A DNA stretch of 64,000 bases from Lepidodermella squamata (Eukaryota; Animalia; Gastrotricha): contig JBLDXI010000011.1 in the NCBI GenBank assembly GCA_047495785.1, forward strand, positions 1,302,001 through 1,366,000, read 5' to 3'. Below, one piece after another: positions 34,975-56,913 of the stretch (positions are counted from its first letter, which is position 1; every line of letters starts with the position of its first letter). The notes below the pieces were generated by a model. That model was given only the letters and a program-made list of their open reading frames with translations. It did not search any database and had not been told where the DNA came from. Both the position numbers and the translations under genes were made by a program.

Positions 34975-35727
34975 ATGAGGCGACGTTCACGCAAATCGGC
35001 CAAATGTAAGAAAACTGCCGTTGAAACTGCTGTTGGTGGAATTTCAATCAACGATCTGCCGAAAGAAATTCTTTTCGAAATTTTCCTAAAATTCCTGAAA
35101 TTTTCTGATTGGAAAAATTGCGTGCTGGTTTGCCGAAAATGGAAGAATTTAATCGACTCGGATGCGATGATCGCAGCTCGTTGGAAGCAAGAATTTAGTC
35201 GCCATCTCAATAAACCATTGGACTCTCCCCACGATTTGAAAGTCTTTACAAATTGGCGAAAAATTCAAAAGAAACGCAGCAGTTTTTTCTCAAAGGATGG
35301 CCTAGTTATAGAGGAATTACACCCGTCCCTAAAACCCATCTATGTGTGGTACGAAGCCGTTAGCGATGAAGATTTTCTACTCTACAACAAATTGTCAAAA
35401 TTTGAAAAAGCCGCGAAATCATTGGCTAGACATCGGAAAAAAATCGTTAATCGAATAAGCTTTTTAGAAACGGACGTGGGCACATTCTGGCTGGTCGACC
35501 TTGAGAAAGTAATCCCCGGTTTCTCATCATTGGCGAATTTGGTGAAAATTCTGAAATTTCCCCTCGTTATCGGACGATTCAGCTACAAAAATGAGAGGAA
35601 ACCCGTTGAAAAATTGCTGGCTTGCCTGGACTCGAATTTCAAATCAATTCCTTTTGAGGCGATTTTTCATGAAATTGCAATTTTCATGTCTGAATTACCC
35701 GAAAATTGCCGTTATATTATGGTATAA
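34975..35727 (+). CDS. F-box array member (4), C-terminally truncated (lacks WLPWPSQ and tail); possible pseudogene
   Basis: Close paralog of 40193..41122, but homology stops at CRYIMV* and the missing part was not found downstream. Confidence 0.75.
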   Translation: MRRRSRKSAKCKKTAVETAVGGISINDLPKEILFEIFLKFLKFSDWKNCVLVCRKWKNLIDSDAMIAARWKQEFSRHLNKPLDSPHDLKVFTNWRKIQKKRSSFFSKDGLVIEELHPSLKPIYVWYEAVSDEDFLLYNKLSKFEKAAKSLARHRKKIVNRISFLETDVGTFWLVDLEKVIPGFSSLANLVKILKFPLVIGRFSYKNERKPVEKLLACLDSNFKSIPFEAIFHEIAIFMSELPENCRYIMV

Positions 35728-37147
35728 TATATCTAACCATTTTTTCCTCCTAATGTCATGACTTATTTCGAATTTATTAATTGAATTTTTTAAACCTGAG
35801 CAACCTTAATGAAAAGAGAGCAAGAATCGCGACAAATTCCACAGGTCCACCACCTCGGGATAAATTGAAAATTGAGGTTCATTTATTTCAATTTTTAATT
35901 TTTCGTACATATTATTTCTGTATAACAAAATCACATTTCGTTCCTATTTTTAATTTAATTCCAGCTGAAAACGTAAAGGAAATTCCAGCGGACTAATTTT
36001 TTGGTTTTTCAAAACAAAAAACGGGATTCCGAAATCTTAGCCAATTTTTCCGCGTGAAATAGGTAGTTATTAGCGAAGGGCCCTAACAACCCTAACAACG
36101 AAATTTGGAAAAACTCCAAAATTGACCTAAACCTAACCGTGAACCCTATAACCAAGCCCTAGCCTTAAACCTGAATCTTTATTTCAACCCCTAACCCCAA
36201 CTCTTAATTTTGCTGAAAAACACAATTTTATGAAAAAAATATGTATGAAAGAACGCTTCGTAAGAATTATCTCCCAAAGTTGGCGATTTTTGCCCTCATC
36301 AATGAACCTTACGACCCTGTGATTTTTGCTTTATAGTTAACTGGAACCTGGAACCCTTTAAGATACCTTTTAATCGCTTGGCGAGGGTTGCAAGACTTAC
36401 TTTTGCCTGAGATAGAATAGAACAGGAATTCGATGGATTGCCCGCGTGTGTGTTAAATTTAGTTCGAACAGCAATCCTTCGTCTAGAGTCTAGAAGCCTG
36501 CAAGTCTACAAGTCTGAACACGAATCTACTCTGTTTAGTATTAATAGGCCGGATCGGCGCTGGCTAGTATTGACGTCACTGCATAGTGTTAGGCAGAACA
36601 ATAGCCACATACGATACCGGCGCTAAAACCTTCATGCCTTTCTCGTGTAATAACGTGCCGTCATGCTTGGACGGTTTGTGTGAATCAAGTGTTTAAGTAG
36701 ATTTTCCGCCTAATATTGTAAATTTTGCTTTCAGGAATGCTGATAGTAGGTATAGGTAGAAATAACTAATTTTCCTATAAAAGCTATACTTGAAATTGAT
36801 ATCGGATATGAAGGAAACTGTTTACTAAAATCGCCTAATTCGCTTTTTAAATCTTTCGGCTAGATAAAATTAGATTAAAGGACACCCAGAAACTCGAACA
36901 ACTTTATTTCTAGAAACTTGATGACTTGGATCGGAACACAGAATTTACGGCTAGCATTTGAGTAATCCTCGGAAGGTCGATATTAAAAATTACCATCAAG
37001 TTGAGCATAATAACCTGGATTAGGTTCGTTCAATTCATTGATTTTAAATTATTTTGGAAAATTATTTGATAATTCTGTGAATATTATCGTCTTGTCCCCA
37101 ATGCCGCATTGACAATTTTTAGAATTTTACTGTAAAAATTCCCTGCT

Positions 37148-37996
37148 ATGGATCGATGCCAGCCAGGCTTGGTGGCGGCATCATTATCCGTTGCTTCAAT
37201 TTCAATCAACGATCTGCCGACGGACATTCTTTTCGATATTTTCCTGAAATTCCTGAAATTTTCAGATTGGAAAAATTGCGTTCTGGTTTGCCGGAAATGG
37301 AACAATATAATCGATTCGGATGCGATGATCGCAGCTCGTTGGAAACAGGAATTTAGTCGTTATCTCAAAATGCGATTCGTTTCTCCCCAGGAGAATCCCC
37401 AAGAGAAATCAGTTGATACAACGTATTTTACAAATTGGCGGAAAATTCAAAAATTCAACGGCAGCTTTTTCTCGAAAAATGGCCTAATTCTAGACCATTT
37501 GGACCCTAACGAGATCGACTTCTCGGGCAATGACGTGATTACAATTGACGCCGCCATAAAATTACTGGGTCAAAATCGCGAAAAGGTCATCCATCCAATC
37601 AGTCTTTTGAGATTCCACACGAACGATTATTGGCTGATCGACCTTGAGAAAGTAATCCCCGGCTTTTCGCTAGCAGATCTGTTAAAAAACCTGGAATTTC
37701 CCCTCGTCTGCAGATATTGCAATTGTAATTATACAATGAGAAAGCCTGTTACAGATTTTCTGGTGTGTTTAGACTCGAATTTCGTGCTCGTTCTCATGTC
37801 CACTTTTTGTGACGGCAGCACTTTTGCCATGCTTGACTTGGATCGAGATTCTCGCTACTTGTTAATACATGATAGCACGTTTTCTAGTTTATGGCTGCCC
37901 TGGCTGAGCCAGTTGGACGAATTTAAAAAGTTTAATAATCTATTAATATGGCCGCGGCATTACAGACACTTATTTTCGAAGCCGTCTTTGCCGTAA
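37148..37996 (+). CDS. F-box array member (5)
   Basis: SINDLPTDILFDIFLKFLKFSDWKNCVLVCRKWN plus the full family C-terminal domain. Confidence 0.9.
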   Translation: MDRCQPGLVAASLSVASISINDLPTDILFDIFLKFLKFSDWKNCVLVCRKWNNIIDSDAMIAARWKQEFSRYLKMRFVSPQENPQEKSVDTTYFTNWRKIQKFNGSFFSKNGLILDHLDPNEIDFSGNDVITIDAAIKLLGQNREKVIHPISLLRFHTNDYWLIDLEKVIPGFSLADLLKNLEFPLVCRYCNCNYTMRKPVTDFLVCLDSNFVLVLMSTFCDGSTFAMLDLDRDSRYLLIHDSTFSSLWLPWLSQLDEFKKFNNLLIWPRHYRHLFSKPSLP

Positions 37997-38095
37997 AATC
38001 GACGTCGAACAAGAGCTGTTAGGGTCAAATCACACGTCTGGGGGCAAAAATATGCCGATACAGCCGACTTTAATATCGGCTCTAGTACATTTCTA

Positions 38096-38537
38096 CAGTG
38101 AAAATCAAAAGTTCCGCACGGTCAGGAATTTGTTGAGTTGAAGCTAAAAATATCTCACACGCGCCCGAACTATTTTTAGCTCCAAGCTTGGGTTAAACTC
38201 AGCTTAAAATAAAAAGTGTAACTCGGACAGACCAAGAAGTTTTAATGGTTATAAAAATATGAATATTCATAATGTGCTAATTAATATTCCGAAGCCCTCA
38301 AAGTGCTCAAATTTTTCTGAAATGTTTGGCACTAACAATGTCCTAGTTTCATGCCATCTCATGAGTATATTAATTTTTTTAAAACTATCCCCTTTCCTTG
38401 GATCTATTTTTGGAGCTCGTGCAAAAGGCGTAATTTTGGTCCGTTTTGCAGGAGATAAACAGCCTCAACTCGCACGTGCGAAAAACTTCAACTAGCGTCG
38501 CCTCAATTCCACAGTGCGGATCTTTTGATTGCCACTG
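38096..38537. mobile_element. Tc1/mariner-type MITE (442 bp)
   Basis: TA flanks at 38094-95 and 38538-39; imperfect TIR CAGTGAAAATCAAAAGTTCCGCAC / GTGCGGATCTTTTGATTGCCACTG. Confidence 0.85.
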
Positions 38538-40192
38538 TATATGTCGTACCGTAAAAGGCGATTTCTCCCAATTGCCAATTGAGGTATCTCAATGAGCAAT
38601 CCGAATCGTTCCCAACGTCATTTTCAGTTATTTTAAGAAGTTTTAAGAATATGGAAACCAAACAACGTTGCAGAATCGCCCTTCGCCTATCCAGCAGATA
38701 CCATTTTCCCTAATAACTTGTATGGTATCTGCGTGTTTTATGAGTTTTTAAAAAGTTGGCGGATTTTCGCTGTAACTGTTATTGGGCCTCCTCGGCCCAT
38801 CTAAACTCTTTAGTAGTCTGTTAGCAGACCAATCGATAGGGCTCTGTGATATGTGCTAGGTTTTTATTCAATAACCTGAAGACTGATGAAAACAAAAGAC
38901 GAAAAGCAATTTTCAGATTGCTCATTGAGATACCTCAATCGGCAATTGGGAGGATTGCCTTTAACGATACGACATATACTTATGCAGGATAAAGACGACT
39001 TTTCACATGTGACTTCTACGTCACATGACTATTCACGAATAAAGTCAGCTTTATGTTCGAAAATCACGTTGTGGATGAAACTAGCTCTAAGTCTATCGTA
39101 TAAACTAGCTGAGATCAGAGAGAATTTTTTTATTCGCAACAAAAAATGGCCGAAAATGAGTGAAAAGTGGGGTTTTGCGAAAATGTAGACATCGCGAAAT
39201 TTTGATGCCGCTTTGAAGGTCAATAAACGAGCAGTCGATCGTCGATAAAAAATAGGTTGATATTCATCAGGGTTACAGAGAAAATGGGCTTCAAAGTTTG
39301 GGAGTGGCAATTCCTAATTTCGAACAATGCGCACTTGAAATATTTGAGTTTTTATTACCAGCATTAGAATTCCCTCACGCGAAAAATTCTGATGTCATTT
39401 TTTTCATGCGCTGTCGACATTTCTTAGGGTAATCTGAGGTGAGGAATCTTGCTATATATTCAAACATTTTGTTAGGATCAAGCTAGTGTGTCTAGGACAA
39501 CCCGAATCAATGACACTTTCCTGGACATCTCTGGAATTTTCCGTATTTTAAGGCGGATCTCAAATTTGAAAATTTAAAATCCTTAAAATTTAAGAGAAAA
39601 ACTGAGCAGAGACATCCAAGAATCGTTCCTCTTCAAGTCAACGCACGTTTTGCCATTTGCTGGAAAATACAGAAAATACGCCAAAGAGAGACAAAGTCAC
39701 GCCCGAAAAATTTTAGAAAAATTCGAAAAGTCACAATAATAGTAATCGAGTATGTGACTTGTTGATGGGATTAAAAAAGGATTTAAAAACCCGGAAAACC
39801 CCGATGGTAACTGGTTCGGTAATATTCGTATTTTTTCCGGTTAGACCAAATGAGGTTCCAGCGCTAAAATTAAGCGACGTGGCACCAATATTCCGATTCT
39901 TCAAGAGTTCGGCTCATTCGCCTATTAATTGATACTGATGCCCTCCCTGAGCCTAGGATTTCAATTTCAGCTACATGATGACCTAAGGTATGTAGAAAAT
40001 TGGCCGTCTTGCCTGTTGGTTTTGCCGGAAATAGTACTTATTTCTTGAAGGATATTTTCAGAATTTGAATTTTGTTATAAAGAAAATCTCGGAACGTTAT
40101 TTCATCGTAGATTTTAGAACGTGCAATTTTTTTTTAATTATTCGAAAAGGAATTTCAATATTTTTGTAGGTTATTAAAAAATAACTCGCATC

Positions 40193-41122
40193 ATGAAGCG
40201 AAGTTTACGCGAATCGTCGGCAAAATTGAGGAAAACTGCCGTTGAAACTGTTGTTGGTAGAATGTCAATCAACGATCTGCCGATTGAAATTCTCTTCGAT
40301 ATTTTCCTGAAATTCTTGAAATTTTCCGATTGGAGAAACTGCGTTCTGGTCTGCCGAAAATGGAACAATATAATCGATTCGGATGCGATGATTACAGCTC
40401 GTTGGAAACAGGAATTTAGTCGTCATCTCAAAAAACCATTAAATTTCCCCCACGATATGAACGTTTTTACAAATTGGCGAAAAATTCAAAAGAAACCGCG
40501 CAGTTTTTTCTCGAACGATGGCCTGGAAATTAGCCCGTCCCTAGAGCCCATCCATTTGTGGTATTATGTCGATAGCGATGAAGATTTTCTACTCGACCAG
40601 AAATTGTCTAAAATTGGAGAAGCCGTGAAATCAATCGTTAAAAATCGCGAAAAAATCGTCGACCGAATCAGCCATTTAGAGGTGGACGAGGGGAAATTCT
40701 GGCTGATCGACTTAGAGAAAGTGATCCCCGGCTATTCACTGGCGAATTTGGTGAAAATTCTGAAATTTCCCCTCGTTATCGGACGTTTCAGTTACAAAAA
40801 TGAGAAAAAACCCGCCGAAAAATTGCTGGCTTGCCTTGACTCGAATTTCAAATCAATTCATTTCGAGGCGATTTTTCACGAAATCGCATTTTTCATGTCT
40901 GAATTACCCAAAAATTGCCGTTATATTTTGGTCCATTGCAAATTGGACTATTTTGGACATACCAGTTTGTGGCTGCCCTGGCCGAGCCAGTTGGACGGCT
41001 TGAAATCGTTATTTTCCCGCGAGCGAGGGTGGGAGGAGAGTGATGAAGAGGAAATGAAGCAATATGGCGAGTTCCCTTACGAGGATTATTCATTCGGATT
41101 CAGCTTGGCATATGGAAGTTGA
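40193..41122 (+). CDS. F-box array member (6)
   Basis: F-box, family domain and acidic tail; 309-aa intact ORF. Confidence 0.92.
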   Translation: MKRSLRESSAKLRKTAVETVVGRMSINDLPIEILFDIFLKFLKFSDWRNCVLVCRKWNNIIDSDAMITARWKQEFSRHLKKPLNFPHDMNVFTNWRKIQKKPRSFFSNDGLEISPSLEPIHLWYYVDSDEDFLLDQKLSKIGEAVKSIVKNREKIVDRISHLEVDEGKFWLIDLEKVIPGYSLANLVKILKFPLVIGRFSYKNEKKPAEKLLACLDSNFKSIHFEAIFHEIAFFMSELPKNCRYILVHCKLDYFGHTSLWLPWPSQLDGLKSLFSRERGWEESDEEEMKQYGEFPYEDYSFGFSLAYGS

Positions 41123-41307
41123 AGTGGAAAAAAATGCAAAATTTCAAACTCACAAATGTGATATGTAATATTTTTTTTAACATTTTTGTAACTTTTCGCT
41201 CCTATTTTCATGTAAAATTGAAGTCGAATGCGATCTGGTTTTAATTTTTTGAAAATTTTCTGAATTTTGAATTTTTAGAAATTCGGAAATGAATTTTAAT
41301 TTTCAAA

Positions 41308-42255
41308 ATGAAGCGAGCAACACCGAATTTTAGGGATGAACCGCGAAAATTTGCAGTCGCTTATCGAAGGCCGAGACGTTCTCCAATCAACGATTTACCA
41401 CCCGAAATTTTGAGCGAAATATTTTTGAAACTGAAAAAATTGAGCCACTGGCTATCTTGCATGTTGGTCTGCCGAAAATGGTACCAAGTTATCGATTCCG
41501 ACCAAATGATAGCAGCTCGATGGCACAAAGAATTTCCGAATTTTTTGAACGCGAAAAATTTTGGCGATTGGAGACATTTTCAAAAATCGAATCCCGACTA
41601 TTTCCAAACTTGTGGCCTAACTTTGGACAGATCGAAATTTCACGAAATTTCATTTTCAAACCCAGGTTTCCCAGCTAACGTGCATCCATACGAATTTCCT
41701 CCTCATGCAAATGTGAAAAATCTTCAGAGGCGAATTAAAAACGGTGAAAATCGATCGATTATCGATTTAAATTCGATCAATCACATAAAAATGTATGGCA
41801 ATTATTATTGGCTGATCGATTTCGAAAAAGTTGCGCCGAATTTTTCTCTCGCGAATTTGCTATCGAATTTGAAATTTCCGTTAGCAATCGGCCTCTTCGA
41901 TTATGAAACATCGCCGGGCGATCTTCGAAGGTTCTTTTCATTTTTGAACTCGAATTTTGAAGAATTACAGTTTGAAATGGAATTTTTTGAAACGGCCTGG
42001 ATTTTGCATGATTTTCCGGCTACTTGCCGTTATGTGATGTTCTACGAAAATATGTTGCATTCCACTCATATCTGGCTTGCTTGGCCCAGTCAGCTGGATG
42101 ATTTACGAGAGATGTTCCTTTGTGTAAGGGACGAGCTGCAAAGAATGGCAGACGAAGAGGACAAAATTCTAGAAGAGGAAGAACGCAGTGAAGATGAAGA
42201 ATTGCTTCGACCTTTCTACGATGAGGAATTGGATGAAAACGTCAAGAAGATATGA
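41308..42255 (+). CDS. F-box array member (7), moderately divergent
   Basis: INDLPPEILSEIFLKLKKLSHWLSCMLVCRKWY; YWLIDFE, FSLANLL, WLAWPSQL; acidic tail. Confidence 0.9.
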   Translation: MKRATPNFRDEPRKFAVAYRRPRRSPINDLPPEILSEIFLKLKKLSHWLSCMLVCRKWYQVIDSDQMIAARWHKEFPNFLNAKNFGDWRHFQKSNPDYFQTCGLTLDRSKFHEISFSNPGFPANVHPYEFPPHANVKNLQRRIKNGENRSIIDLNSINHIKMYGNYYWLIDFEKVAPNFSLANLLSNLKFPLAIGLFDYETSPGDLRRFFSFLNSNFEELQFEMEFFETAWILHDFPATCRYVMFYENMLHSTHIWLAWPSQLDDLREMFLCVRDELQRMADEEDKILEEEERSEDEELLRPFYDEELDENVKKI

Positions 42256-42691
42256 ACCGACAGGGTCGGGCTATTCGAAATACGCTTCAAAAAATTGAAA
42301 AACCGAAACTGTATCATTTGGACCTGTCAAAATAATACCCTAAAACTGACGTTTTTTGAAAATAAAATCTTTTACCGAAATATTGAAAAAAATTGAAAAA
42401 ATATGAAATCTGAAAAATCAAGTTGAGAATAATATGTTACTGGAGAAAAATCGATAATTTTTAAAGACTTTAAGAGGGAAAAGTTTCTTTCAGCGAAACA
42501 GCGTCTGAGCCAAATTTCAAAACTTGGCTTGGCACTCAGTAATATTGAACAATTAAAAAAAATATTTGTAAAATTAGGATGAAAAATTATCTAATTTTAT
42601 ATTGCAAAATGAAATTTTTTAAATATGTAAATTTCTAAAATAATTCCCTGAAAAATTGAATTTAGGCTTCGTGTTGAAATTAACTGATTCA

Positions 42692-43606
42692 ATGAAGCGG
42701 AACCTGTCGCAATCTAGCGATTCTCCTGCGAAATTAGCTAAACCCGCCGATGAAAATGTGCCTATTCCGACCAAAGACCTACCAGCCGAAATTTTGTTCG
42801 ACATTTTTTTGAAATTTCTGGACCTTTCCGATTGGAAGAATTGCGTCAGGGTCTGCCGGAAATGGAACAATTTAATCGACTCGGATGCGATGATCGCAGC
42901 TCGTTGGAAACAGGAATTCTGCCTTAATCGAAAGAAACCAGTCGAATTACCGCAAGATTCGACAGTTTTCTCGCAGTGGCGAAAAATTCAAAAAATTAGC
43001 AAAACATTTTTCGATAAATCTGGCCTTGAGCTGGACAAATATAGCTTTCTACCAAAGAATAAAATGGTCGAATTGTCGCTTTTCGGCTTCGCATCTCGGC
43101 AACAAATAAAAAATGTCGCAAGATCGCTTTGGCGAAACCGCGAAAAAATCGTCGGTCCAATCAGCCATTTGGAACTCCACGCGGAACATTTTTGGTTAAT
43201 CGACCTTGAGAACGTAATTCCCGGCTTTTCACTTGCGAATTTGGTGAAAAATCTGAAATTTCCGCTCGTTATCGGATGCTACGATTGCCGCATTGAGGAA
43301 GAACCTATGAATAGTTTCCTGGCCTGCTTGGACTCGGATTTCGATCGGGTACCTGCGAAGGCGTTATTCCGCGACGTTGCTTTTGTCATTCCCGAATTGT
43401 CTGAAAATTGCCGTTATATCCTGTTTTCTTCCGATACATGGGAGGCTGCTTACTTGTGGCTGCCCTGGCCGAGCCAGATGCCCGATTTGATGTCACGTTT
43501 CGAGGATGAGCGCGACGAACAGAAGGAACTTGAAGGTTCGGATAAAAGTGACGTGGATTCGGAATCTTATGACGATTTTTACGATGAATATTTGACGGTT
43601 TTATAA
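42692..43606 (+). CDS. F-box array member (8)
   Basis: MKR start at 42692 by comparison with paralogs; intact; ends YDEYLTVL. Confidence 0.92.
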   Translation: MKRNLSQSSDSPAKLAKPADENVPIPTKDLPAEILFDIFLKFLDLSDWKNCVRVCRKWNNLIDSDAMIAARWKQEFCLNRKKPVELPQDSTVFSQWRKIQKISKTFFDKSGLELDKYSFLPKNKMVELSLFGFASRQQIKNVARSLWRNREKIVGPISHLELHAEHFWLIDLENVIPGFSLANLVKNLKFPLVIGCYDCRIEEEPMNSFLACLDSDFDRVPAKALFRDVAFVIPELSENCRYILFSSDTWEAAYLWLPWPSQMPDLMSRFEDERDEQKELEGSDKSDVDSESYDDFYDEYLTVL

Positions 43607-44446
43607 CGCTGTCTTGCCTGTCTTGCTGCTGGAAAAATTAGTTCGTAACGAAATAAAAAATGTTCGTGATTATTGATGAAAATTCCACTTCACCGCGAAA
43701 TGCGGCGATTTTTTTAGTTTATAATCTCGCTTTTTTTCGTTATTCTCGTACTTGGTGAAAAATATTGGAAGAAATAATGAAATTCGAAAATATTTCGCCA
43801 GATGATCATTTGTTCTAATTTCTAATCAATCATTAATAAATCGAACAATCACCTCGAACAACATATTTGAGGTGGTCTAAAATCGAATTATGGCCACTAA
43901 ATCGTCCATGATATTCGGTTGATACGGCGTGTCCTAGAAATTGCGCAGCTATTTTCGGCAATTTAAACTTAATATTTAAAATTAAACCTACCGAGAGAAT
44001 ATCTATCCACGATTTGACCGAAGAGATACAAAATTTACCGGAGGAAACCCAGTGGTAAAACTGGTTCGGTAATTTTTCGGTATTTTACCCGGTTGGACCT
44101 AATTTTCCCGGGACTTTTTAATCCCATTAACAAGTGTCATACATGATTACTATGTTATCGGGATTTTTTTGCGATTTTTCCAAATTTTTCTGGCCGTGAG
44201 GTTTTATCGAGTTTTTCGGGTGAATTTTCTTTGCTTGCGTAACTTATGGGACACGCTGTAATAATGAACATTGCCTGAGTGGTGCGTCAAATTAAGTAAA
44301 TAAAAATTGTGTTACTTGATGGATTGTTTAATAAAATTGCTTACACCTTTGTTTCAAGTTTAAACTTCTAGCCTAGTACAATTTTATTAATTGAGTGATT
44401 AAATGTAAATTCGATTTTTAGGGTGATCAAAAATTAAATTCGATTA

Positions 44447-45367
44447 ATGAAGCGGAGCCTGGCTGAATCGAGCGAATCTTTGGCGAAGTTAGCTAAAACC
44501 GCCGATGAAAATCCCCCCATTTCGACCAAGGAACTGCCAGCCGAAATTTTGTTCGACATTTTTTTGAAATTTCTGGACCTTTCCGATTGGAAAATTTGCG
44601 TCAGGGTCTGCCGGAAATGGAACAAATTAATCGACTCGGATGAAATGATCGCAGCTCGTTGGAAACAGGAATTCTGCCTTAATCGAAAGAAACCAGTCGA
44701 TTTACCGCAAGATTTAGCTCTTTTCTCGCAGTGGCGACAGATTCAAAAAATCAGCAACACGTTTTTCAGCGATGTTGGCCTTGATTTGGACGAAAGTAAC
44801 TTTCTGCCGAATAAATTGATCAAACTACCGGGTGTTTCCGAGAAATTTCACCAACAAATGATAAATGTCGCAAAATCACTTGCCAAAAAACGCAAAATAA
44901 TTGTCGATCCAATCAGCTATATCGAATTTGACTTGGAAAATTATTGGTTAATCGACCTTGAGACCGTAATTCCCGGCTTTTCTCTTGCGAATTTAGTGAA
45001 AAATCTAAAATTTCCTCTCGTTATCGGACGTTACAATTACCACACTGAGGAAGCCCATGTCAGCGATTACCTGGCGTGTTTGGACTCGAATTTCAAGCGG
45101 GTATCCGCGAAGGCGTTTTTTCGCGACATTGCGTTTGTCATGCCTGAATTTTCTGAAAATTGCCGCTATATCTTGATTTGTTCCGATGCGGGGGAGACTG
45201 GTGCTGGTTGTTTGTGGCTGCCCTGGCCGAGCCAGATGGCCGATTTGATGTCAAGTTTCGCCGATGAGCGCGACGAACAGGAGGAGCTTGAAAGTTCGGA
45301 GGACGAGAGTGAAACGGACCCGAAATCTTACGACGATTATTACCAGGAATATTTGACGGTTTTGTAA
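44447..45367 (+). CDS. F-box array member (9)
   Basis: Intact 306 aa; close paralog of member 8; ends YQEYLTVL. Confidence 0.92.
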   Translation: MKRSLAESSESLAKLAKTADENPPISTKELPAEILFDIFLKFLDLSDWKICVRVCRKWNKLIDSDEMIAARWKQEFCLNRKKPVDLPQDLALFSQWRQIQKISNTFFSDVGLDLDESNFLPNKLIKLPGVSEKFHQQMINVAKSLAKKRKIIVDPISYIEFDLENYWLIDLETVIPGFSLANLVKNLKFPLVIGRYNYHTEEAHVSDYLACLDSNFKRVSAKAFFRDIAFVMPEFSENCRYILICSDAGETGAGCLWLPWPSQMADLMSSFADERDEQEELESSEDESETDPKSYDDYYQEYLTVL

Positions 45368-46256: not shown

Positions 46257-47108
46257 ATGAAGCGGAAGCGGCCTCGATCGAGAAAATCTTCGGCAAAAGT
46301 ACAAAAAATCGCCGATAATAATGCGCCTTCGATTTCTATCAACGATCTACCAGTCGAAATACTTTTCGATATTTTTCTGAAATATTTGAACATTTCACAT
46401 TGGCAAAATTGCGTTCTGGTCTGCCGAAAATGGAAGAATTTAATCGACTCGGATGCGATGATTGCCGCTCGCTGGAAGCAGGAATTTCGCTTTAAACGCA
46501 AGAAAGCAGTCGATTTACCGACAGATTTGACAGTTTTCTCGCAGTGGCGAAAAATTCAAAAAATTAGCGGCAGTTTCTTCTCGAAGAATGGCCTAGTTTT
46601 GGACAAAAAAGAAATAGCGCGGAACAAATTTACCAAATTGTCGGTTGACAGCGAGAAATGGGGGCCTAAATTTGCGAACGTTGTGAAAGCATTGGGTCGA
46701 AATCGCGAACAAATTGTCGACCCGATCAGCTATCTAAAAGCAGACTCATGCTCCTATTGGCTGATCGACCTTGAGACAATAATTCCTGGATTTTCACTCG
46801 CGAATTTGGTGAAAAATCTGAAATATCCCCTCGTTATCGGACGTTTCATGTTCATATCATTTGGGGATAATCTTGTTAAAGAACGCATGGCTTGTTTGGA
46901 CTCGAATTTCCAGCCAATTCCCGCTAAAACTATTTTGTGCGGCGTGGCTTTTGCCCTGGCGAAATTGCCTGAAAACTGTCGTTATATTATGATCTTTCGC
47001 AATTCATCACCGGCTCAGCTGTGGCTGCCCTGGCCGAGTCAGTTTGCGGCTTTGAAATCGCGTTTTTCTAAAGAGCTTCGACAAATATACAAAGACTTTT
47101 TTGAATGA
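46257..47108 (+). CDS. F-box array member (10)
   Basis: Intact 283 aa; basic N-terminus MKRKRPRSRK; no acidic tail. Confidence 0.92.
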   Translation: MKRKRPRSRKSSAKVQKIADNNAPSISINDLPVEILFDIFLKYLNISHWQNCVLVCRKWKNLIDSDAMIAARWKQEFRFKRKKAVDLPTDLTVFSQWRKIQKISGSFFSKNGLVLDKKEIARNKFTKLSVDSEKWGPKFANVVKALGRNREQIVDPISYLKADSCSYWLIDLETIIPGFSLANLVKNLKYPLVIGRFMFISFGDNLVKERMACLDSNFQPIPAKTILCGVAFALAKLPENCRYIMIFRNSSPAQLWLPWPSQFAALKSRFSKELRQIYKDFFE

Positions 47109-47212
47109 TTATGAAGATTCAAAATTGAAAAGAATCGAGGCTGTAAAAGTTTCAATGTGAAATGATCGATAGTTTGGGAGTAATTATTTTAACAAATTTG
47201 AAATATCATAGC

Positions 47213-48140: not shown

Positions 48141-48185
48141 ATCATAGCCTTGACCAATTATTTTGATCTTTTGTATTTTGCATTG

Positions 48186-48628: not shown

Positions 48629-48873
48629 TTTTGCATTACATATTTCTGCATTTTTGTATTATTTGTACACAACATTATTTTGAAAGTGCGAGCTATTTTT
48701 TTATAAAATTGAAAATGAGCAATTTAATGTTATGAAACATTGAACAAATCGAATTTAATGATGCGTAACTCGAGCAAATCTTACACAGCTTTTTCCAGAG
48801 CGCATCAGACAAACAAGTTTTCATTGTAAATCAATGTTGATTTTTAGGGTTTTCGTAAAGTTGATGACATTCT

Positions 48874-50244
48874 ATGAAGAGAAGCCTTTCACAATCGAGC
48901 GAATCTTCCGTAAAATTACAAAAATTCGCCGATGAAAATGCGTATTCGATTTCAATCAACGATCTGCCAGCCGAAATTTTTCTGAAATTTCTGGAGCTTT
49001 CCGATTGGAAAAATTGCGTCATGGTGTGTCGTAAATGGAACAATATACCGTATTTTACGAATTATAAGACCCTGCCCTGTATTTTTTTCAAACGAGGTTC
49101 AAGTCCTGCCCTGTATTTAGAGTCTGCCCTTTAATTCGGCTCTGCCCTATGATTTTTTCGAACCTAATCAGTCACCTGAAGTGTACCTAGATCAGCAGTT
49201 AAAACCGCCGAATAACCACTATAGCTACTGCCTTCCACCTGTGACTACACTACAAGTGTGTGCTCAAATGGATTTGGGTGGATAAAGGACGATTAGTGCA
49301 CTTACTGACGAGAAATCGCAACCTATCCAACTTTAACCACTTATACCCAGCATGCGCCCATGTAAGCCACTTCATACAAGGCCCTGCCTATTATTAAGGT
49401 TCTGCCCTTTATTATTTCAAATGACCATTACCCTCTGCCCTTTATTCCGGTTCTGCCCTATAATTGGGTCCTGCCTAATAATTCGTAAAATACGGTAATC
49501 GACTCTGATGCGATGATCGCAGCTCGTTGGAAACAAGAATTTAGCTTGCATCGAAAGAAACCAGTCGATTTCCCAAAAGATTCGACGGTTTTCTCACAAT
49601 GGCGAAAAATTCAAAAAATTGGCAGTTCCTTTTTCTCACGTTACGGCCTCGTCCTGGACCATCAATATGAATTTCTGCTGGATAAATTGATCAAATTGCC
49701 GCTTGATGGCGATAAATAGCCGCTAGCAATTGATGCTGTCGTTGAATCGCTGGAACAAAATCGCGAAAAAATCGTCGAACCAATCAGCTATTTAGAAATT
49801 GACTGGGCAGAATATTGGTTAATCGACCTTGAGAACGTAATGCCCGGTTTCTCTCTACCGAAATTGGTGAAGAATCTCAAATTCCCCCTTGTTATCGGAC
49901 GTTACAATTACCACACTGAGGAAGAACCGGTTGATAATTACCTGGCCTGTTTGGACTCGAATTTCAAGCCGGTACCCGCAAAAGCTCGTTTTCGAGAAAT
50001 TTCATTCGTCATGTCTGAATTGTCTGAAAATTGCCGATATATCTTGATGTATTACGATTTATCGCCCACCAGTTTGTGGCTGCCCTGGCCGAGCCAGATG
50101 GCCGATTTGTTGTCACGTTTCGAGGATGAGCGGCGAGATCAGGAGCGTGAAGATGGAGTTGAGAGTGGAATCGAAGACCCCGAGGCTTACTTTGGCGCCG
50201 AATGGTCTGATGACGGCAGTTATGACGGTGAATATCCGTTCTGA
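48874..50244 (+). pseudogene. F-box array pseudogene (11): MITE insertion, in-frame TAG at 49717-49719, 12-nt deletion in the F-box
   Basis: ORF pieces 48874, 49513 and 49840 rejoin into one family member once 49048-49497 is removed. Confidence 0.9.
49048..49495. mobile_element. pogo/Tc2-like MITE (448 bp) inserted in an F-box CDS
   Basis: TIR CCGTATTTTACGAATTAT / ATAATTCGTAAAATACGG; TA duplicated (49046-47, 49496-97). Paralogs show the empty site AACAATATAATCGA. CTGCCCT direct repeats lie near both ends. Confidence 0.93.
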
Positions 50245-50868
50245 TTTCTTCCGTCTTGTTTAAAAATAGAAATGACCGTGAGGAAAAAATTATTCCTATA
50301 TAAATTAAAAAATAATTCTGGGAACTGAAATGCAAATTTCAGAGCTTTTCCCTTATTGTGCATAATTTGAAAATTTTTACACATAATCTCGTTAATTTTC
50401 TACTAATTTTTATGTCGATATCAAGCTGTCCAGTGGCGAAATTTGAATAATATATGTATGTTAAATACTGATTATTATCTCCAGGTGATAATTTCTGAAA
50501 TCGTCGGATGAATCATCAATGACCAAGCCAAAAATTCTACCCCTTGATTTTTCGATACCATGTATCGTGTTTCGCGTCCAAAATTCACCTGGTTTTGATT
50601 TTCAGTGAATTAAAGTGTTGATTGTCTGAAATTAGGCCACGCGCCACGCTGTGATTTCTGACCAGGTTCGATTTCAACCATTAAAATTGAGGATTCATAA
50701 GACGGTTTTACTTCGAGCTCGTTTATTCCTTTGTTTCAATTTCAACAAAATTTCTATTCTTGTACAATTTTTCCAGCGAAAAATCGCTTAATAAATCAAT
50801 ATTTCGCTCTCTTTAAAAAATGTAAATTCGATTTTTAGGGTAATTTGCATGAAGCTTACTTTTCTTTA

Positions 50869-51738
50869 ATGAAGCGGAGCCTGGCTGAATCGAGCGACTC
50901 CTCGGCAAAAGTTGCAAAATCCGCCGATGAAAATGCATCTGCGATTTCAATCAACGATCTGCCAATCGAAATTCAATCCGAAATTTTCCTGAAACTGCGC
51001 AAACTTTCCGATTGGCAAAATTGCGTTATGGTTTGTCGAAAATGGAATAATGTAATCGACTCGGATGCGATGATCGCAGCTCGTTGGAAACAGGAATTCC
51101 TCCTTAATCGAAAGAACCCGGTTGATTTACCAAAAGATGTGACAGTTTTCTCGCAGTGGCGAAAAATTCAAAAGATTAGCGACAGTTTCTTTTCAACAAA
51201 TGGCCTAGTTTTGGACAAAGCCGGACCCCCACTGGATAAATTGATCAAATTGCCGCTCGATGGAGTTGAAAATCTGCGGAATATAGTAAACGTCGCAAAA
51301 TCGCTGGGTCGAAATCGCGAAAAAATTGTTGAGCCAATCAGTTATCTCCGACTGGACTCAGAGCGTTATTGCCTTGTTGACCTTGAAAATGTGATTCCCG
51401 GATTTTCTCTAGCGAATTTAGTGAAAAATCTCAAATTTCTCCTCGTTTTCGGCCGTTTCGACCTTAGTTATCAAAACGCGATTGAACCTATCGGTAAATG
51501 CCTGGCCTGTCTGGACTCGAATTTCACGCCAGTTCGCGCAAAAGCTACGAGTTCATACGACGTTGTTGTTGTCATGGATTTGCCTCTTGATTGCCGGTAT
51601 ATTTTGATTAATTCCGGGTCAGCAAAGACGAATTTGTGGCTGCCATGGCCGAGCCAGTTGACCGACTTGAAGTCGCGTCTCATCCAGGCTGATGATTACA
51701 ATCACGACAGTTATTATAATGCTTTTTATCAGCATTGA
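50869..51738 (+). CDS. F-box array member (12)
   Basis: MKR start at 50869; intact family domain; short Y/D tail. Confidence 0.9.
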   Translation: MKRSLAESSDSSAKVAKSADENASAISINDLPIEIQSEIFLKLRKLSDWQNCVMVCRKWNNVIDSDAMIAARWKQEFLLNRKNPVDLPKDVTVFSQWRKIQKISDSFFSTNGLVLDKAGPPLDKLIKLPLDGVENLRNIVNVAKSLGRNREKIVEPISYLRLDSERYCLVDLENVIPGFSLANLVKNLKFLLVFGRFDLSYQNAIEPIGKCLACLDSNFTPVRAKATSSYDVVVVMDLPLDCRYILINSGSAKTNLWLPWPSQLTDLKSRLIQADDYNHDSYYNAFYQH

Positions 51739-52047
51739 CCAGTTCCGATTGTGTTCGTCTTGATAGAATTTCGGAAAGTAAAATTTTCTATAATATTTCA
51801 TAAATTTCTGCCGGCTTTTTTTCATGGCTCTTAAATCTTCAAAAGGCGAAAGAAGAACTTCAGATTTGATTTTACAGATTGAATCGCGCTTTTGCATTCT
51901 GATTTGATTCATCCATGAAATGAAGTATAAAAACTCAGTAGAGTCACTGTAGTATAAAACAATTGCTTCATAGCAAATATAAAACTCACAACAAGTGCGA
52001 GGTTCCATTTTTAGAAACATTTGAAAGTAAAATTGATTTAATTAATA

Positions 52048-53019
52048 ATGAAGCGGAACCTGGATGAATCGAGTGAATCCTCGGCGAAGGTAGCAAAATC
52101 CGCCGATGAAAATGCATCTGCGATTTCAATCAACGATCTGCCAATCGAAATTCTATCCGAAATTTTCCTGAAACTAGCTAAACTTTCCGATTGGCAAAAC
52201 TGCGTTCTGGTCTGTCGGAAATGGAACAGCGTAATCGACTCGGATGCGACGGTCGCGGCTCGGTGGAAGCAAGAATTCGCCTTGATTCGAAAGAAATCGG
52301 TCGATTTACCAAAAGATTTGACAGTTTTCTCGCAGTGGCGAAAAATTCAAAAAACTAGCTCGAGTTTCTTTTCGAAAAATGGCCTAAATCTAGACAAAAT
52401 CGAAGCGGTGCCGATCAAGTTGTCGCTGAAGGGCAAACGGCAGATACAAGATACGTTAACGAATGTCGCGAAAGCTCTTAGCCAAAATCGCCGGAATATT
52501 GTTGATTCAGTCAGTTGTGTAACGTTTGAATTCAGTAACTATTGGTTGATTGATCTTGAAAAAGTTATTCCTTGCGTTTCGTTGGCGAATTTGTTGGCAA
52601 TTTTGCAATTTCCCATCGTGATCGGGCGTTACAGCTATCAACTCGAGGATGAACCCTTCGGTGACTATGTAGCTTGTTTGGACTCGAATTTCGCGTCGCT
52701 TCCCGCGAAAGCTAGATTCTGCGACGCTGCTTTTCTCATGCCGGAATTGCCCGAGCTTTGCCGTTATATTTTGATCGATTGCGAGTCTTATTATGATGAT
52801 AACAGTCACCCTAAGAATATGTGGCTGCCCTGGCCGAGCCAGTTGGCCGATTTGAAATCGCGTTTTTGTGACGAGCGTGAGGAAGAGCAGGAGCGTGACC
52901 GTGAAACTTGGAGGTTAGAGAATCGAGAGGCCGCCGATTATTTCGACGATGACGACGATGATGAGGATGACGATGGTTTTCCTTACTTCTCCGGATTTTG
53001 TTCGTCTTGTGATTGCTGA
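52048..53019 (+). CDS. F-box array member (13)
   Basis: Intact 323 aa; poly-D tail ending GFCSSCDC. Confidence 0.92.
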   Translation: MKRNLDESSESSAKVAKSADENASAISINDLPIEILSEIFLKLAKLSDWQNCVLVCRKWNSVIDSDATVAARWKQEFALIRKKSVDLPKDLTVFSQWRKIQKTSSSFFSKNGLNLDKIEAVPIKLSLKGKRQIQDTLTNVAKALSQNRRNIVDSVSCVTFEFSNYWLIDLEKVIPCVSLANLLAILQFPIVIGRYSYQLEDEPFGDYVACLDSNFASLPAKARFCDAAFLMPELPELCRYILIDCESYYDDNSHPKNMWLPWPSQLADLKSRFCDEREEEQERDRETWRLENREAADYFDDDDDDEDDDGFPYFSGFCSSCDC

Positions 53020-53822
53020 GATGGAGAGACTTGAAAAAAAGAAAATTAGTGTTGAAATGATGTTTGAAAAATCTACCTTAAATTGGGGTGACTTGGGCAT
53101 ATCGAAAATCGAAGGTGGTAATAAGGTAAAGATCGCATGAGGGAGGTACCGTTAGATAGTCTGAAAGATGAAATCTCCTAAGATGGCGTATGGTTTCAAT
53201 TTAGATGAGACGGATTCGGTTGACCAGCCACGGAAGTTTTACCGAAATTTAACAATTTCGAAAAGTTTAAAGTTTACCATAACTTGACCTATAATTTCAT
53301 TTCCCGAAATAGGTTGTATTGTACACTGGCCTTTTCTTGGGCTATCCAATGGTACCCCACTCATGGGGCCTCTACCTTGTCACCCCCTTCACCCCATAAT
53401 TTACGGTACCTGTTTAGTTTTGTTGTTAATTTTCCAACTAATATTTTTTACTTGTTACGTTTTTCAAAAATGATGGGCTGATCAGTGGTCTGCTTAGTCA
53501 TGATGTAAAAATTTCACGATTCAGAAATATGAGTAAAATGAAAAGATACATGTCTCAAATCATTCATTAATCATTAATTGCCTTTCTATTTTGATCGACA
53601 TTAATCACGGTATTCAATTTTTGATTCAGTGAATCTTACACATTCGTTCAAACAATCGTTCGCTATCATCTTTTTTTAATTTTCGAGCTAGCTTGAACGA
53701 CAAATGAACCTAAAAGTGACAGGCTATACTGCGAACTAACTTTGATTTATTAATTCATATTTTACGGTCTCTGATGAAGATATTTTGAATATTATATCGA
53801 TTTATTTCGATACATTGAGGCT

Positions 53823-54665
53823 ATGAAGCGACACATTTCCCAATCTGGCGAAGCAACGGCTAAATTGATTAAAACGTCCGATAATACTACGATTTCTATC
53901 AACAATCTACCCGTCGAAGTTTTGTTCGATATTATTCTGAAATATTTGAAAATTTCTCATTGGAAATCCTGCGCTCTGGTCTGCCGGAAATGGAATGCTA
54001 TAATCGACTGTGATGAGATGATCGCAGCTCGTTGGAAACAGGAATTTCGCTCTAATCAAACGAAACCGAAAGAGTTACCGAAAGATTTCACTGTTTTATT
54101 CTCGGAGTGGCGAAAAATTCAAAAAATTAGCGGCAGTTTCTTCTCGAAGAGTGGCCTAGTTTTGAACAAAGAAGAAGCGCGGAACAAATGTATTAAATTG
54201 TCAGTTGATGCCGATTATCTTTGTCCTAAAATTGCGGAGGTTGTTGAAGCGTTGGGTCGAAATCGCGAACAAATTGTCAACCCTATCAGCTATCTAAAGG
54301 CAGATTTGATATCTCATTGGCTGATCGACCTTGAGAACGTAATTCCTGGCTTTTCACTTGCGAATTTGGTGAAAAGTCTGAAGTTTACTCTCGTTATCGG
54401 CCGTTTCAAGTTTATAACATGGCGCTGTGATCGTGTTAGACATCGCATGGCTTGTTTGGACTCGAATTTTCAGCCAGTTCCCGCTAAAACTATTTTGTGC
54501 GGCGTGGCGTTTGCCCTGGCAGAATTGCCTGAAAACTGCCAATATATTTTAATCGGGGGCGATTCATCACAGGCTCATCTGTGGCTACTTTGGCCTAGTC
54601 AGTTTGCGGCTTTGAAATCGCGCTTTTCTAAAGAGCTTCGACAAATATACCAATCAGGGGCGTAG
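53823..54665 (+). CDS. F-box array member (14)
   Basis: Intact 280 aa; close paralog of member 10. Confidence 0.92.
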   Translation: MKRHISQSGEATAKLIKTSDNTTISINNLPVEVLFDIILKYLKISHWKSCALVCRKWNAIIDCDEMIAARWKQEFRSNQTKPKELPKDFTVLFSEWRKIQKISGSFFSKSGLVLNKEEARNKCIKLSVDADYLCPKIAEVVEALGRNREQIVNPISYLKADLISHWLIDLENVIPGFSLANLVKSLKFTLVIGRFKFITWRCDRVRHRMACLDSNFQPVPAKTILCGVAFALAELPENCQYILIGGDSSQAHLWLLWPSQFAALKSRFSKELRQIYQSGA

Positions 54666-54832
54666 AATCTGCATGATTGTCAAGATACAGACGAATTTCG
54701 GTTTTGATCTCTCTCGTTCACGTAGCAACTGGTGGGAAGGAGAAACTTGCTACAAAAATGGCTATCGAAACAAAAATGTCTTTAAGAACTTGAATTTAAA
54801 TTTTGATTTTTAGGGTGTTGATCATTTTCACA

Positions 54833-55665
54833 ATGAAGCGAAACTTTTCCTACACTAGCAAATCGCCGGCAAAATTTGCAAAAACCGCCGTTGAAAAAGC
54901 TTCGATTTCGATCAAAGATCCGCCAATCGAAATTCCATCCGAAATTTTCCTGAAACTGCGGAGACTTTCTTATTGGAAAAATTGCGCTCTGGTTTGCCGG
55001 AAATGGAACGCTTTAATCGACTCGGATGCGATGAATGCGGCTCTTTGGAATAAAGAGTTTCGCCTCGACCGAAAGAAACCGGTCGATTTACCAAAAGATT
55101 CGACTGCTTACTCGCAGTGGCGAAAAATACAAAAAATCGGCGGCAGTTTTTTCTCGAAAAATGGTCTTATTCTGGATGAAGATGACTTTCTGCCCAATAA
55201 ATTGATAAAACTGTCGCATGATGGCGAGGAAGATCCTCGAAAAATAACTGATTTTGTCAAATCTCTGGGGCGAAATCGCGAAAATATCGTCGATCCAATC
55301 AGCTATCTAGAATTTGATTTGCAACGATTTTGGTTAATCGACTTCGAAAACGTAATTCCTGGCTTTTCGTTGGCGAATGTGTTGAAAAATCTCAACTTTC
55401 CACTTGTTATCGGACGCTACAGACACCACTATGAAGAAGAACCTGTCAGTGATTACTGGGCATGTTTGGACTCGAATTTCGCGCCAGTACCTGCAAGAGG
55501 TTGCTATCTCGACGTTGCCTTTTACATTGAATTGCCTGAAAATTGCCGCTATGTGTTGGTGTGTTGCGAGCCAGCAAAGACGAATTTGTGGCTGCCATAG
55601 CCGAGCCAGTAGGCCAATTGAAGTTGCGTCTCATCACGGGTTACATCAGCATTATTTATTACTTT
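54833..55665 (+). pseudogene. F-box array member (15) with premature stops in the WLPWPSQL motif
   Basis: TGG CTG CCA TAG CCG AGC CAG TAG versus paralog TGG CTG CCC TGG CCG AGC CAG TTG; F-box also eroded (IKDPPIEIPSEI). Confidence 0.75.
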
Positions 55666-55956
55666 CCGACTTCGAAAATGAGGTTTTTCCGTATTGACCC
55701 TTGGCGGATAGTTGGTGGATTGTACATTGTGTTCGTCTCGCTCAATGAGGGATTTGGCTGCTATAAAATTGTCGTATTTTCAATGAAAATGACTCGATCT
55801 TTCTGAATTTCAGAATTACTTTAACTTGAATTTAACTATGTAAGCAAATTTGTAATTGCAATTTTTCTACATGGACATTTCCTTCTTTCAAATAAAATCC
55901 CTTATTTTGCTATTTTTTGATGATTTTATTTTAGGGTATTCGTGAAATAAAGTTTT

Positions 55957-56913
55957 ATGAAGCGAAACCTATTCCAATCGAGCGAATCGCCGGCGAAATT
56001 CGCCAAACCCATCGATGAAAATGTGTCGATTTCGATCAACGATCTGCCAATCGAGATTCTATCCGACATTTTCCTGAAACTGCCGAAACTTTCACATTGG
56101 AAAAGTTGCGCCCTAGTCTGCCGGAAATGGAACACTTTAATCGACTCGGATGCGATGATCGCAGCTCGCTGGAAACAAGAATTCAGCTTGAATCAAAAGA
56201 AACCGGTCGAGTTGCCTCATAATTTGAGCATTTTTTCCGAGTTGCGGAGAATCCAGAAAACCAGAGAGAGTTTCTTCTCGAAAAGTGGCCTAGTTCTGGA
56301 CGAAGAAAAAATGGTCCCAAAACTGACCAAGCTCTCGCTTCGTGGCGAGCATGATGAATTTGACATTGAAAACTTGGTGAAATCACTAGATCAAAATCGC
56401 AAACAAATTGTTGATCCTATCAGCTATCTACAACTGGATTCGGAGCGTTATTGGCTTGTTGATCTTCAGGCCATAATTTCTGGCTTTTCGTTGGCGAGTT
56501 TGGTGAAAAATCTGAAATTTTCTCTTGTTATCGGTTATTACAGTTACAAAATTGAGGGAGAACCTGAGGAAAAATACCTAGCTTGTTTGGACTCGAATTT
56601 CAAATCAGTCCCATTTGATGCCAGTTTTTGTGACTCTGCTTTTGTCATGTCTGAATTGCCTGAAAATTGCCGCTACATTGTGATCTATTGCAATTCTGAA
56701 TGTTACGACCAGACGCACGTGTGGCTGCCCTGGCCGAGCCAGTTGGCTGTTATGAAGTCGCGTTTGTACAGAGAGCGGCAGGAAGAGGAGCGTGAAGACG
56801 AACAGGAGCGTCTGGAAGATTACGCTGATCATTACTACGATGGCGATGATTACGACGGTTATGACGATGGTTATGATACATTCGGATTTTGCTCGTCTTG
56901 CTGCGACTGCTGA
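55957..56913 (+). CDS. F-box array member (16)
   Basis: Intact 318 aa; D/Y/G-rich tail ending GFCSSCCDC. Confidence 0.92.
   Translation: MKRNLFQSSESPAKFAKPIDENVSISINDLPIEILSDIFLKLPKLSHWKSCALVCRKWNTLIDSDAMIAARWKQEFSLNQKKPVELPHNLSIFSELRRIQKTRESFFSKSGLVLDEEKMVPKLTKLSLRGEHDEFDIENLVKSLDQNRKQIVDPISYLQLDSERYWLVDLQAIISGFSLASLVKNLKFSLVIGYYSYKIEGEPEEKYLACLDSNFKSVPFDASFCDSAFVMSELPENCRYIVIYCNSECYDQTHVWLPWPSQLAVMKSRLYRERQEEEREDEQERLEDYADHYYDGDDYDGYDDGYDTFGFCSSCCDC

Follow-up and report, generated by a model that had tools for sequence, protein, structure and literature searches.

A tandem F-box gene family with conserved blocks and five variable patches in the gastrotrich Lepidodermella squamata

We analyzed a stretch of 64,000 nucleotides from the gastrotrich Lepidodermella squamata (NCBI GenBank assembly GCA_047495785.1, contig JBLDXI010000011.1, positions 1,302,001 to 1,366,000 of the forward strand), hereafter the window, which carries a tandem array of F-box genes. 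Twelve open reading frames (ORFs) of one F-box family, each encoding 250-323 amino acids, lie head to tail on the + strand between 33.6 and 56.9 kb of the window (contig C11 in our numbering), and two clearly broken copies stand in the same array, which gives about 14 copies. The aligned copies consist of conserved blocks and five variable patches, denoted V1 to V5. The reading that we favor, at a probability of about 60%, is that the array is a lineage-restricted expansion of FBA-like F-box proteins, whose apex loops would evolve at a near-neutral rate and have diverged by relaxed constraint.

Conserved blocks and variable patches in a tandem F-box family

We scanned six of the proteins with Pfam and found an F-box at about residues 27-65 and no other domain in every one of them. 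The F-box scores were 38-48 bits in all six (E 1e-9 to 1e-12), as against the curated cut-offs of 24.3 and 20.5 (PF00646 and PF12937). In the intact copy at 55957..56913 (+ strand, 318 amino acids), which we used as the structural reference, the F-box and the helices that follow it occupy residues 27-77 (56035..56187, + strand; Pfam E 1.4e-9) and would form the SKP1-binding part. A predicted complex with the single-exon SKP1 of the same genome scored 0.77, compared with 0.02 for the best control; among solved complexes, 51 of 78 attain that mark, and among mismatched pairs, 2 of 108. At least 79% of the contacts agreed between runs, and the predicted local distance difference test (pLDDT) of the partner was at least 65. 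Because similar complexes have already been solved, this pass may reflect likeness to them and is not proof.

In a profile search of the 121-Mb genome, seven further members were identified on this contig, some 170-210 kb downstream. Beyond this part of the contig, there were only three weak matches, all confined to the F-box, on contigs C18, C24, and C7.

The conserved blocks are the F-box, WRKIQK...FFSK.GL, NREKIVDPISYL, YWLIDLE.VIPGFSLANLVKNLKFPLVIG, ACLDSNF, ELPENCRYIL, and LWLPWPSQL. Mean pairwise protein identity was 52-85% in the blocks and 13-36% in the patches, where DNA identity was 43-58%. The lag-1 autocorrelation of column entropy along the alignment was 0.50, a value reached in none of 5000 permutations. 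The block and patch pattern is thus real and far from chance. The first-pass annotation of this DNA had described the pattern from nine peptides lying between LVIG(R) and CLDS, and we found all nine, in the ORFs at 34975, 42656, 44447, 46257, 50845, 52048, 53823, 54803, and 55957. The further variable patches that it had listed after GL.LD, ISYL, DSNF, and CRYIL, with indels and swings in charge, were likewise seen in the alignment.

We located the five patches on the reference copy, with secondary structure taken from the predicted model described below (all coordinates on the + strand). V1 covers residues 116-136 (56302..56364) in the region connecting beta1 to beta3, with column entropies of 2.0-2.4 bits and a ratio of nonsynonymous to synonymous substitution rates (dN/dS) of 0.79. 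V2, residues 159-164 (56431..56448), is the turn of the predicted beta3-beta4 hairpin and aligns with Phe177 of Fbs1. V3, residues 194-208 (56536..56580), is the predicted beta5-beta6 loop and corresponds to the segment between LVIG and CLDS; its net charge, by our count, spans about -4 to +4 among the copies. V4 covers residues 216-233 (56602..56655) in the predicted beta7-beta8 hairpin. V5, residues 245-251 (56689..56709), is the predicted beta9-beta10 loop and sits where Fbs1 has Tyr279 and Trp280.

Selection on the blocks and patches

Between copies, with the saturated copy at 41308 left aside, whole-gene dN/dS was 0.27-0.51 at synonymous divergences (dS) of 0.34-1.4. Over all pairs, dN/dS was 0.16-0.31 in the blocks (dS 0.7-1.4) and 0.50-0.79 in the patches, and the F-box and the sandwich core of the C-terminal domain gave 0.16-0.25. 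The flanks of the variable segments had been taken in the first-pass annotation to be near-identical at the DNA level. They are not: nucleotide identity in the blocks is only 67-84%. Since the blocks differ at 45-64% of their synonymous sites, they are kept by purifying selection on the protein and not by recent homogenization.

This bears on the view that the array is a conversion mosaic, in which gene conversion keeps the blocks alike and the patches escape it. A tract of about 60-85 nt with a single mismatch is shared by 50914-50996 and 52093-52175, at the 5' ends of the copies at 50869 and 52048; over the rest of their length, these two neighbors are about 75% identical, and the tract probably reflects a short gene conversion. 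Some short islands are also invariant at silent sites, including those of codons with 4- and 6-fold degeneracy. The 12 nt encoding DSNF read GAC TCG AAT TTC in all or all but one of 11 copies (10-11 of 11), and nine copies have in common a GC-rich 23-mer over WLPWPSQ (for example, 56720-56742), in a region of 38% GC. Codon preference, micro-conversion, or constraint at the RNA level are possible causes of these islands. In addition, the proportion of synonymous differences (pS) is somewhat lower in the blocks (0.45-0.56, with one at 0.64) than in the patches (0.55-0.79). However, about half of the synonymous sites in the blocks differ, which is too high a divergence for the blocks to owe their likeness mainly to gene conversion. 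Trees of the N-terminal and C-terminal halves agree in their well-supported clades with the 50869/52048 pair as the sole exception, and the C-terminal domains of the array copies share no long tracts. We therefore rejected gene conversion as the main cause and regard a mosaic of this kind as very improbable.

For the patches, the informative comparisons are three young pairs, namely 42692/44447 (dS 0.34), 46257/53823 (dS 0.36), and 34975/40193 (dS 0.40). In ascending order, their ratios of nonsynonymous to synonymous differences (pN/pS), pooled over the patches, were 0.46, 0.79, and 0.81, and no patch was significantly above 1. The first-pass annotation had named a dN/dS at or below 1 in the variable segments as the outcome that would tell against a diversifying surface, and this is what was found, over all pairs (0.50-0.79) and in the young pairs (0.46-0.81) alike.

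We then compared codon models written in Python (M0, M1a, M2a, M7, M8, and M8a), each with or without a gamma term for among-site rate variation that scales silent and replacement rates jointly. The main data set comprised 11 copies and 270 codons. Without the gamma term, twice the log-likelihood difference was 14.6 for M1a versus M2a (P 7e-4; 7% of sites at omega 2.35), 30.05 for M7 versus M8 (P 3e-7; 18% of sites at omega 1.66), and 15.5 for M8a versus M8 (P 8e-5; same class as for M8). Sites with a high posterior fell mostly in V1, V2, V3, and V5. With the gamma term, M1a improved by 34 log-likelihood units and no class with omega above 1 was left, the likelihood-ratio test (LRT) statistic being 0.0 for M2a (equal to M1a) and -0.09 for M8 (equal to M8a). 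For the C-terminal domain of the eight intact copies alone, the LRT statistic was 13.07 without and 0.43 with the gamma term.

Simulation gave the same answer. Data simulated on the fitted tree with rate variation and no selection produced M1a/M2a statistics of 22-90 in eight of eight replicates, all above the observed value. The gamma-aware test recovered selection that had been simulated, in four of four sets with 12% of sites at omega 3 and in three of four sets with 10% of sites at omega 2.35. The M7 versus M8 comparison, which the first-pass annotation had proposed as a check, is thus significant, but as an artefact of among-site rate variation, and we discarded both M1a/M2a and M7/M8 as evidence of selection.

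Site-wise tests modeled on fixed effects likelihood (FEL) and on the mixed effects model of evolution (MEME) agreed. In the FEL-like test, which allows each site its own silent rate, the replacement rate exceeded the silent rate at p <0.1 in 18 of 270 sites (minimum p 0.009), which is not clearly in excess of chance, and none remained after correction. The MEME-like test, a second check proposed at the outset, was applied to the 23 best candidate sites and gave a minimum p of 0.034, again with none surviving correction. In both site-wise fits, silent rates are very high at several of the V2 sites picked out by M8.

True diversifying selection on the apex loops, whether from an arms race or for a repertoire, has a precedent in proposals for nematode F-box families. 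It could be masked here by saturation, by multi-nucleotide replacements in which silent positions change too, and by the scarcity of young pairs. We consider this explanation unlikely, though it has several observations on its side: the nominal signal of the models without the gamma term, in the full set and in the intact copies alone, the clustering of the high-posterior sites in four of the patches, and the charge reversals and indels at a probable binding surface. In V3, the young pair 46257/53823 has 12 replacement and two silent differences (pN/pS 1.47). The nominal signal, however, disappears under a test with demonstrated power and is exceeded by simulations that contain no selection, the site-wise minima are unremarkable, and pooled over the patches pN/pS does not exceed 0.81 in any young pair. 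Because dN/dS is at or below 1 in the patches and the signal is lost with the gamma term, diversifying selection is not supported. It is not demonstrable in these data, and would be weak or episodic at most.

The opposite explanation is that the copies are redundant or decaying duplicates, the patches marking the onset of pseudogenization and not specialization. Two clearly broken and two shortened copies among 14, the 54% of codons assigned to the class with omega = 1, and a whole-gene dN/dS of 0.3-0.5 would all fit with decay. Yet 8-10 copies keep frames of 280-323 amino acids at dS 0.7-1.4, the F-box and the sandwich core remain at a dN/dS of 0.16-0.25 with 76 of 270 codons under purifying selection in the FEL-like test, and neutral sites occur in certain loops only instead of all along the genes, so that we hold decay to be improbable.

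The C-terminal domain and the position of the patches

The C-terminal domain had no Pfam match up to E 10 when scanned in 19 family members, and the FTH and FBA_2 models did not match it. Searches of the sequence libraries returned no close relatives. In a word-index protein search, neither the copy at 52048 nor one of the canonical FBA proteins encoded in this genome had a match, a scan of metagenome contigs gave 600 pattern matches of which none were confirmed, and the C-terminal profile matched the PDB sequences once, at chance level. Against 1.84 billion representative proteins, the domain-only profile had a single match, to the four F5/8 type C domains of one bacterial protein. Each repeat scored about 9 bits, in the region of the YWLIDL strand, with an hhalign probability of 32%, and we set kinship with F5/8 type C domains aside as a superfamily hint at best. 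The nearest clusters in the ESM Atlas were nematode F-box-associated families at 0.75-0.82, which is under the chance level of the tool and serves as a lead only.

We predicted the structure with AlphaFold2 from 19 family sequences. The whole protein reached a pLDDT of 83.4 and a predicted template modeling score (pTM) of 0.78, and the domain alone reached 88.2 and 0.87. In this confident model, the F-box helices are followed by a linker helix and then by a sandwich of 10 strands, and the C-terminal part is a long helix. In the sandwich, helices lie in the beta2-3 and beta4-5 connections and the strand order is that of the FBA domain. The top Foldseek match was Skp1-FBG3 (E 3.5e-5), followed by Fbs2 and Fbs1; F-type lectin and F5/8 type C domains came after the FBA proteins. 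In VIA-align, the whole protein matched Fbs2 with Z 6.7 (root-mean-square deviation 9.2, 176 residues aligned) and the sugar-binding domain of Fbs1 with Z 5.7 (root-mean-square deviation 3.3, 106 aligned). For the domain alone, Fbs2 and the Fbs1 sugar-binding domain still ranked first and second, with Z 5.2 and 5.1.

Profile comparison pointed in the same direction. Canonical genes with an F-box and an FBA domain, recognized by the Pfam FBA model, are present in this genome as three tandem copies on contig C74 and one spliced copy on contig C9. The three tandem genes (C74:298564-302528; loci L003-L005) are single open frames of 291-297 amino acids, and the spliced fourth is locus L008. Compared with these FBA proteins by hhalign, the family gave a probability of 94.7% (E 5.7e-8); the alignment spans 203 columns and takes in both the F-box and the sandwich. 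The domain on its own gave 46.9% (P 2e-4), and 73.6% (P 2.9e-5) against an alignment of the four FBA domains, into which the spliced gene on C9 entered as separate exon rows. On the sequence profile and the model together, the C-terminal domain is probably a very divergent FBA domain.

To place the patches, we chained the hhalign alignment to the FBA proteins of this genome with a phmmer alignment of a canonical FBA protein to FBXO2. In the latter, the residue numbers of Phe177, Tyr279, Trp280, and Lys281 fall on F, Y, W, and K. The chained alignments assign V1 to V5 to the beta2-3 loop (V1 covering the beta1 to beta3 region) and the beta3-4, beta5-6, beta7-8, and beta9-10 loops, respectively. 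Along the nine connections of the sandwich, each variable one (at least 1.85 bits) is followed by a conserved one (at most 1.0 bit) and each conserved one by a variable one. In an antiparallel sandwich, such strict alternation places the variable connections at one end, and it matches the bottom and top loops of the FBA sandwich (PMC4603797). The Fbs1 pocket is built by the beta3-4 and beta9-10 loops, opposite the Skp1-binding site, and is shaped by the beta2-3, beta5-6, beta7-8, and beta9-10 loops; FBG3, which does not bind sugar, binds the glycan of RNase B once those four Fbs1 loops are swapped into it (PMC4603797). The five patches would thus be apex loops that form or shape a pocket opposite SKP1. 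The proposal that about five loops make up one diversifying substrate-binding surface keeps its first half, by homology and not from coordinates; its second half is not supported, given the patch dN/dS above.

The glycan-contact positions of Fbs1 (Phe177, Tyr279, and Trp280) fall in V2 and V5, among the most variable columns, and are not conserved in the family, as is also the case in FBG3. Because these sugar-contact residues are not conserved, the family is unlikely to bind N-glycans.

Under the reading of a lineage-restricted, FBA-like expansion, the array would encode substrate adaptors of SCF (SKP1-cullin-F-box) ubiquitin ligases, with the F-box docking on SKP1. The order along the protein would be an N-terminal F-box, a helical linker, a 10-stranded FBA-like sandwich, a long helix, and an acidic tail. 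The family would have grown by tandem duplication with copy loss (birth and death). Purifying selection would hold the F-box, the sandwich core, and the linker-facing loops, of which the conserved bottom loops (IPGFSLANLVKNLKF, DSNF, and ELPENC) probably pack on the linker. The five loops at the far end, equivalent to the Fbs1 pocket loops, would change at close to the neutral rate and readily accept indels. This variable apex probably presents substrate to the E2 ubiquitin-conjugating enzyme, each paralogue with a target preference of its own. The copies would therefore most probably differ in what they bind.

A bolder version would see here an FBA-derived orphan F-box family, so far in this animal only, that serves as a germline recognition repertoire, its apex loops diversified for many targets and the adaptation masked by saturation and co-varying synonymous rates. 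By analogy with what has been proposed for nematodes, the targets might be, for example, intracellular pathogens or selfish elements. We think it quite doubtful that this holds.

Several points weigh against the lineage-restricted, FBA-like reading. The copies are known here from DNA sequence alone. The Pfam FBA model (PF04300, the family of FBXO2, FBXO6, FBXO17, FBXO27, and FBXO44) does not match at E up to 1 for the proteins or up to 10 for the 19 domains, the hhalign probabilities for the domain alone are just 47-74%, and the Z values lie in the middling range of VIA-align, so that homology to FBA is not secure. That the patches cluster on one face is read from the alignment to Fbs1 and from strand order. 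On the side of selection, the standard codeml-type tests are nominally significant (P 7e-4 to 3e-7), the patches approach saturation at the older divergences (43% nucleotide identity in V5), which blunts dN/dS tests, and the informative young pairs number three only.

Copies, neighboring genes, and comparison with known systems

The array overruns the limits that the first-pass annotation had given it. All copies described here are on the + strand. Two distant members precede the array in the window. The one at 29911..30807 (Pfam F-box-like E 1.3e-12) has the F-box and the same C-terminal scaffold, aligning over its whole length, and is 19% identical to the copy at 55957; the other, at 32101..32904 (Pfam F-box-like E 8.5e-12), was matched in the profile search. 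The first array copy, at 33582..34126, is broken: profile positions of about 112-198 are missing, positions 16-111 and 199-282 match in adjoining pieces, and there is one in-frame TGA. Two of the 12 ORFs are shortened by stops and may be pseudogenes. The copy at 34975..35727 ends with TAA just past CRYIMV, without the last strand and the start of the WLPWPSQ helix, and the copy at 54833..55600 ends with TAG past LWLP. The copy at 37148..37996 is divergent with its frame open, and the copy at 41308..42255 is the most divergent of the array, at 36-40% identity and with saturated synonymous sites. Intact copies are found at 40193..41122, 42692..43606, 44447..45367, 46257..47108, 50869..51738, 52048..53019, and 53823..54665, in addition to the reference copy. 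The copy at 50869 is the one whose 5' end is near-identical to that of the next gene, and the copy at 52048 has an acidic tail and a Cys-rich C-terminus. The second broken copy, at 48874..50244, consists of an N-terminal piece followed by two pieces with stops. A stretch of about 470 bp with unrelated sequence (49045-49512) separates its F-box from the remainder. The tightest gene spacing in the array is 168-186 bp.

The motif TTTTAG ends 12-33 nt before the start codon in 8 of the 12 copies (34956-34962, 37116-37122, 41272-41278, 44415-44421, 50832-50838, 52008-52014, 54807-54813, and 55928-55934), as against a chance expectation of about 0.4 genes. In three other copies, TTTGTAG or ATTTAG stands at the same place. 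This motif looks like a conserved 3' splice acceptor, and each of these seemingly single-exon genes therefore probably has an intron in the 5' untranslated region or a spliced leader.

Four members carry a Cys-rich C-terminus (CSSCDC, CSSCCDC, CCGGC, or CCSGC) after a long acidic tail, two in the window (52990-53016 and 56881-56910) and two in locus L001 (3630-3662 and 5970-6001). FBXL2 is a known prenylated F-box protein. The composition of these ends suggests that a subset of the family is lipid-modified and anchored to membranes.

Other ORFs in the window, all on the - strand, encode a Galactosyl_T domain (3194-4015; E 1.6e-28), a DUF3504 domain (6410-7177; E 3e-9), and an ANF receptor ligand-binding region (59576-60535; E 2.1e-9). 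Pfam gives no match for an ORF of 479 amino acids at 58069-59508. Between members of the distal F-box cluster lies an ORF of 443 amino acids that resembles a multi-pass membrane protein (locus L002, 3753-5084).

The family offers a compact case of a constant SKP1-binding end joined to a variable, putatively target-binding end, on a scaffold too far from FBA for the family models. It also carries a methodological warning, as M7 versus M8 alone would have appeared to confirm positive selection. Should substrates be found, the 14 natural variants of the loops, all on the same scaffold, would be useful for studying shifts in the specificity of FBA-type domains. If the doubtful repertoire reading were true, it would mean an independent origin of an E3-adaptor immune repertoire in another phylum, on a lectin-type scaffold.

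Among known systems, the antibody-like character claimed in the first-pass annotation holds as a loose structural analogy, with hypervariable loops at what is probably one end of a conserved beta-sandwich. The differences are substantial: the divergence is between germline paralogues and at a near-neutral rate, the fold is not that of an immunoglobulin, and the proteins would be cytosolic E3 adaptors. No diversification mechanism was noticed, and none was specifically sought. Likeness to the galactose-binding-domain-like sandwiches of F5/8 type C domains and F-type lectins is at the superfamily level at best.

Nematode and plant F-box families are described as lineage-specific expansions with a conserved F-box and a fast-evolving substrate domain, in the part of PMC8120010 that summarizes Thomas 2006. 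The present family resembles them in being tandem and lineage-specific, in having an F-box under purifying selection and a far more variable C-terminal domain, and in the pseudogenes that stand among intact copies. It differs in its C-terminal domain, in its much smaller size, and in that positive selection is not demonstrable once rate variation is allowed for.

The closest comparison is with FBXO2/Fbs1, FBXO6/Fbs2, and FBXO44/FBG3 (PF04300), which have the same architecture and gave the best fold matches and the only meaningful profile match. The variable patches here would correspond in position to the apex loops by which the pocket of Fbs1 is made or shaped. Unlike the canonical proteins, the family has no match to the Pfam FBA model, and its identity to the FBA proteins of its own genome is 12-17% over the columns aligned by hhalign. 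Its proteins have an additional long C-terminal helix followed by an acidic tail, and some copies also have a Cys-rich end. The tandem family numbers at least 21 members, compared with three tandem copies and one further canonical FBA copy in this genome. The concept is thus already known from nematodes and plants, and the architecture from FBXO2, FBXO6, and FBXO44. What is new is the family itself, which is missed by the Pfam FBA model and has no relatives in the searched libraries, and which combines extra C-terminal elements with variability on five putative apex loops.

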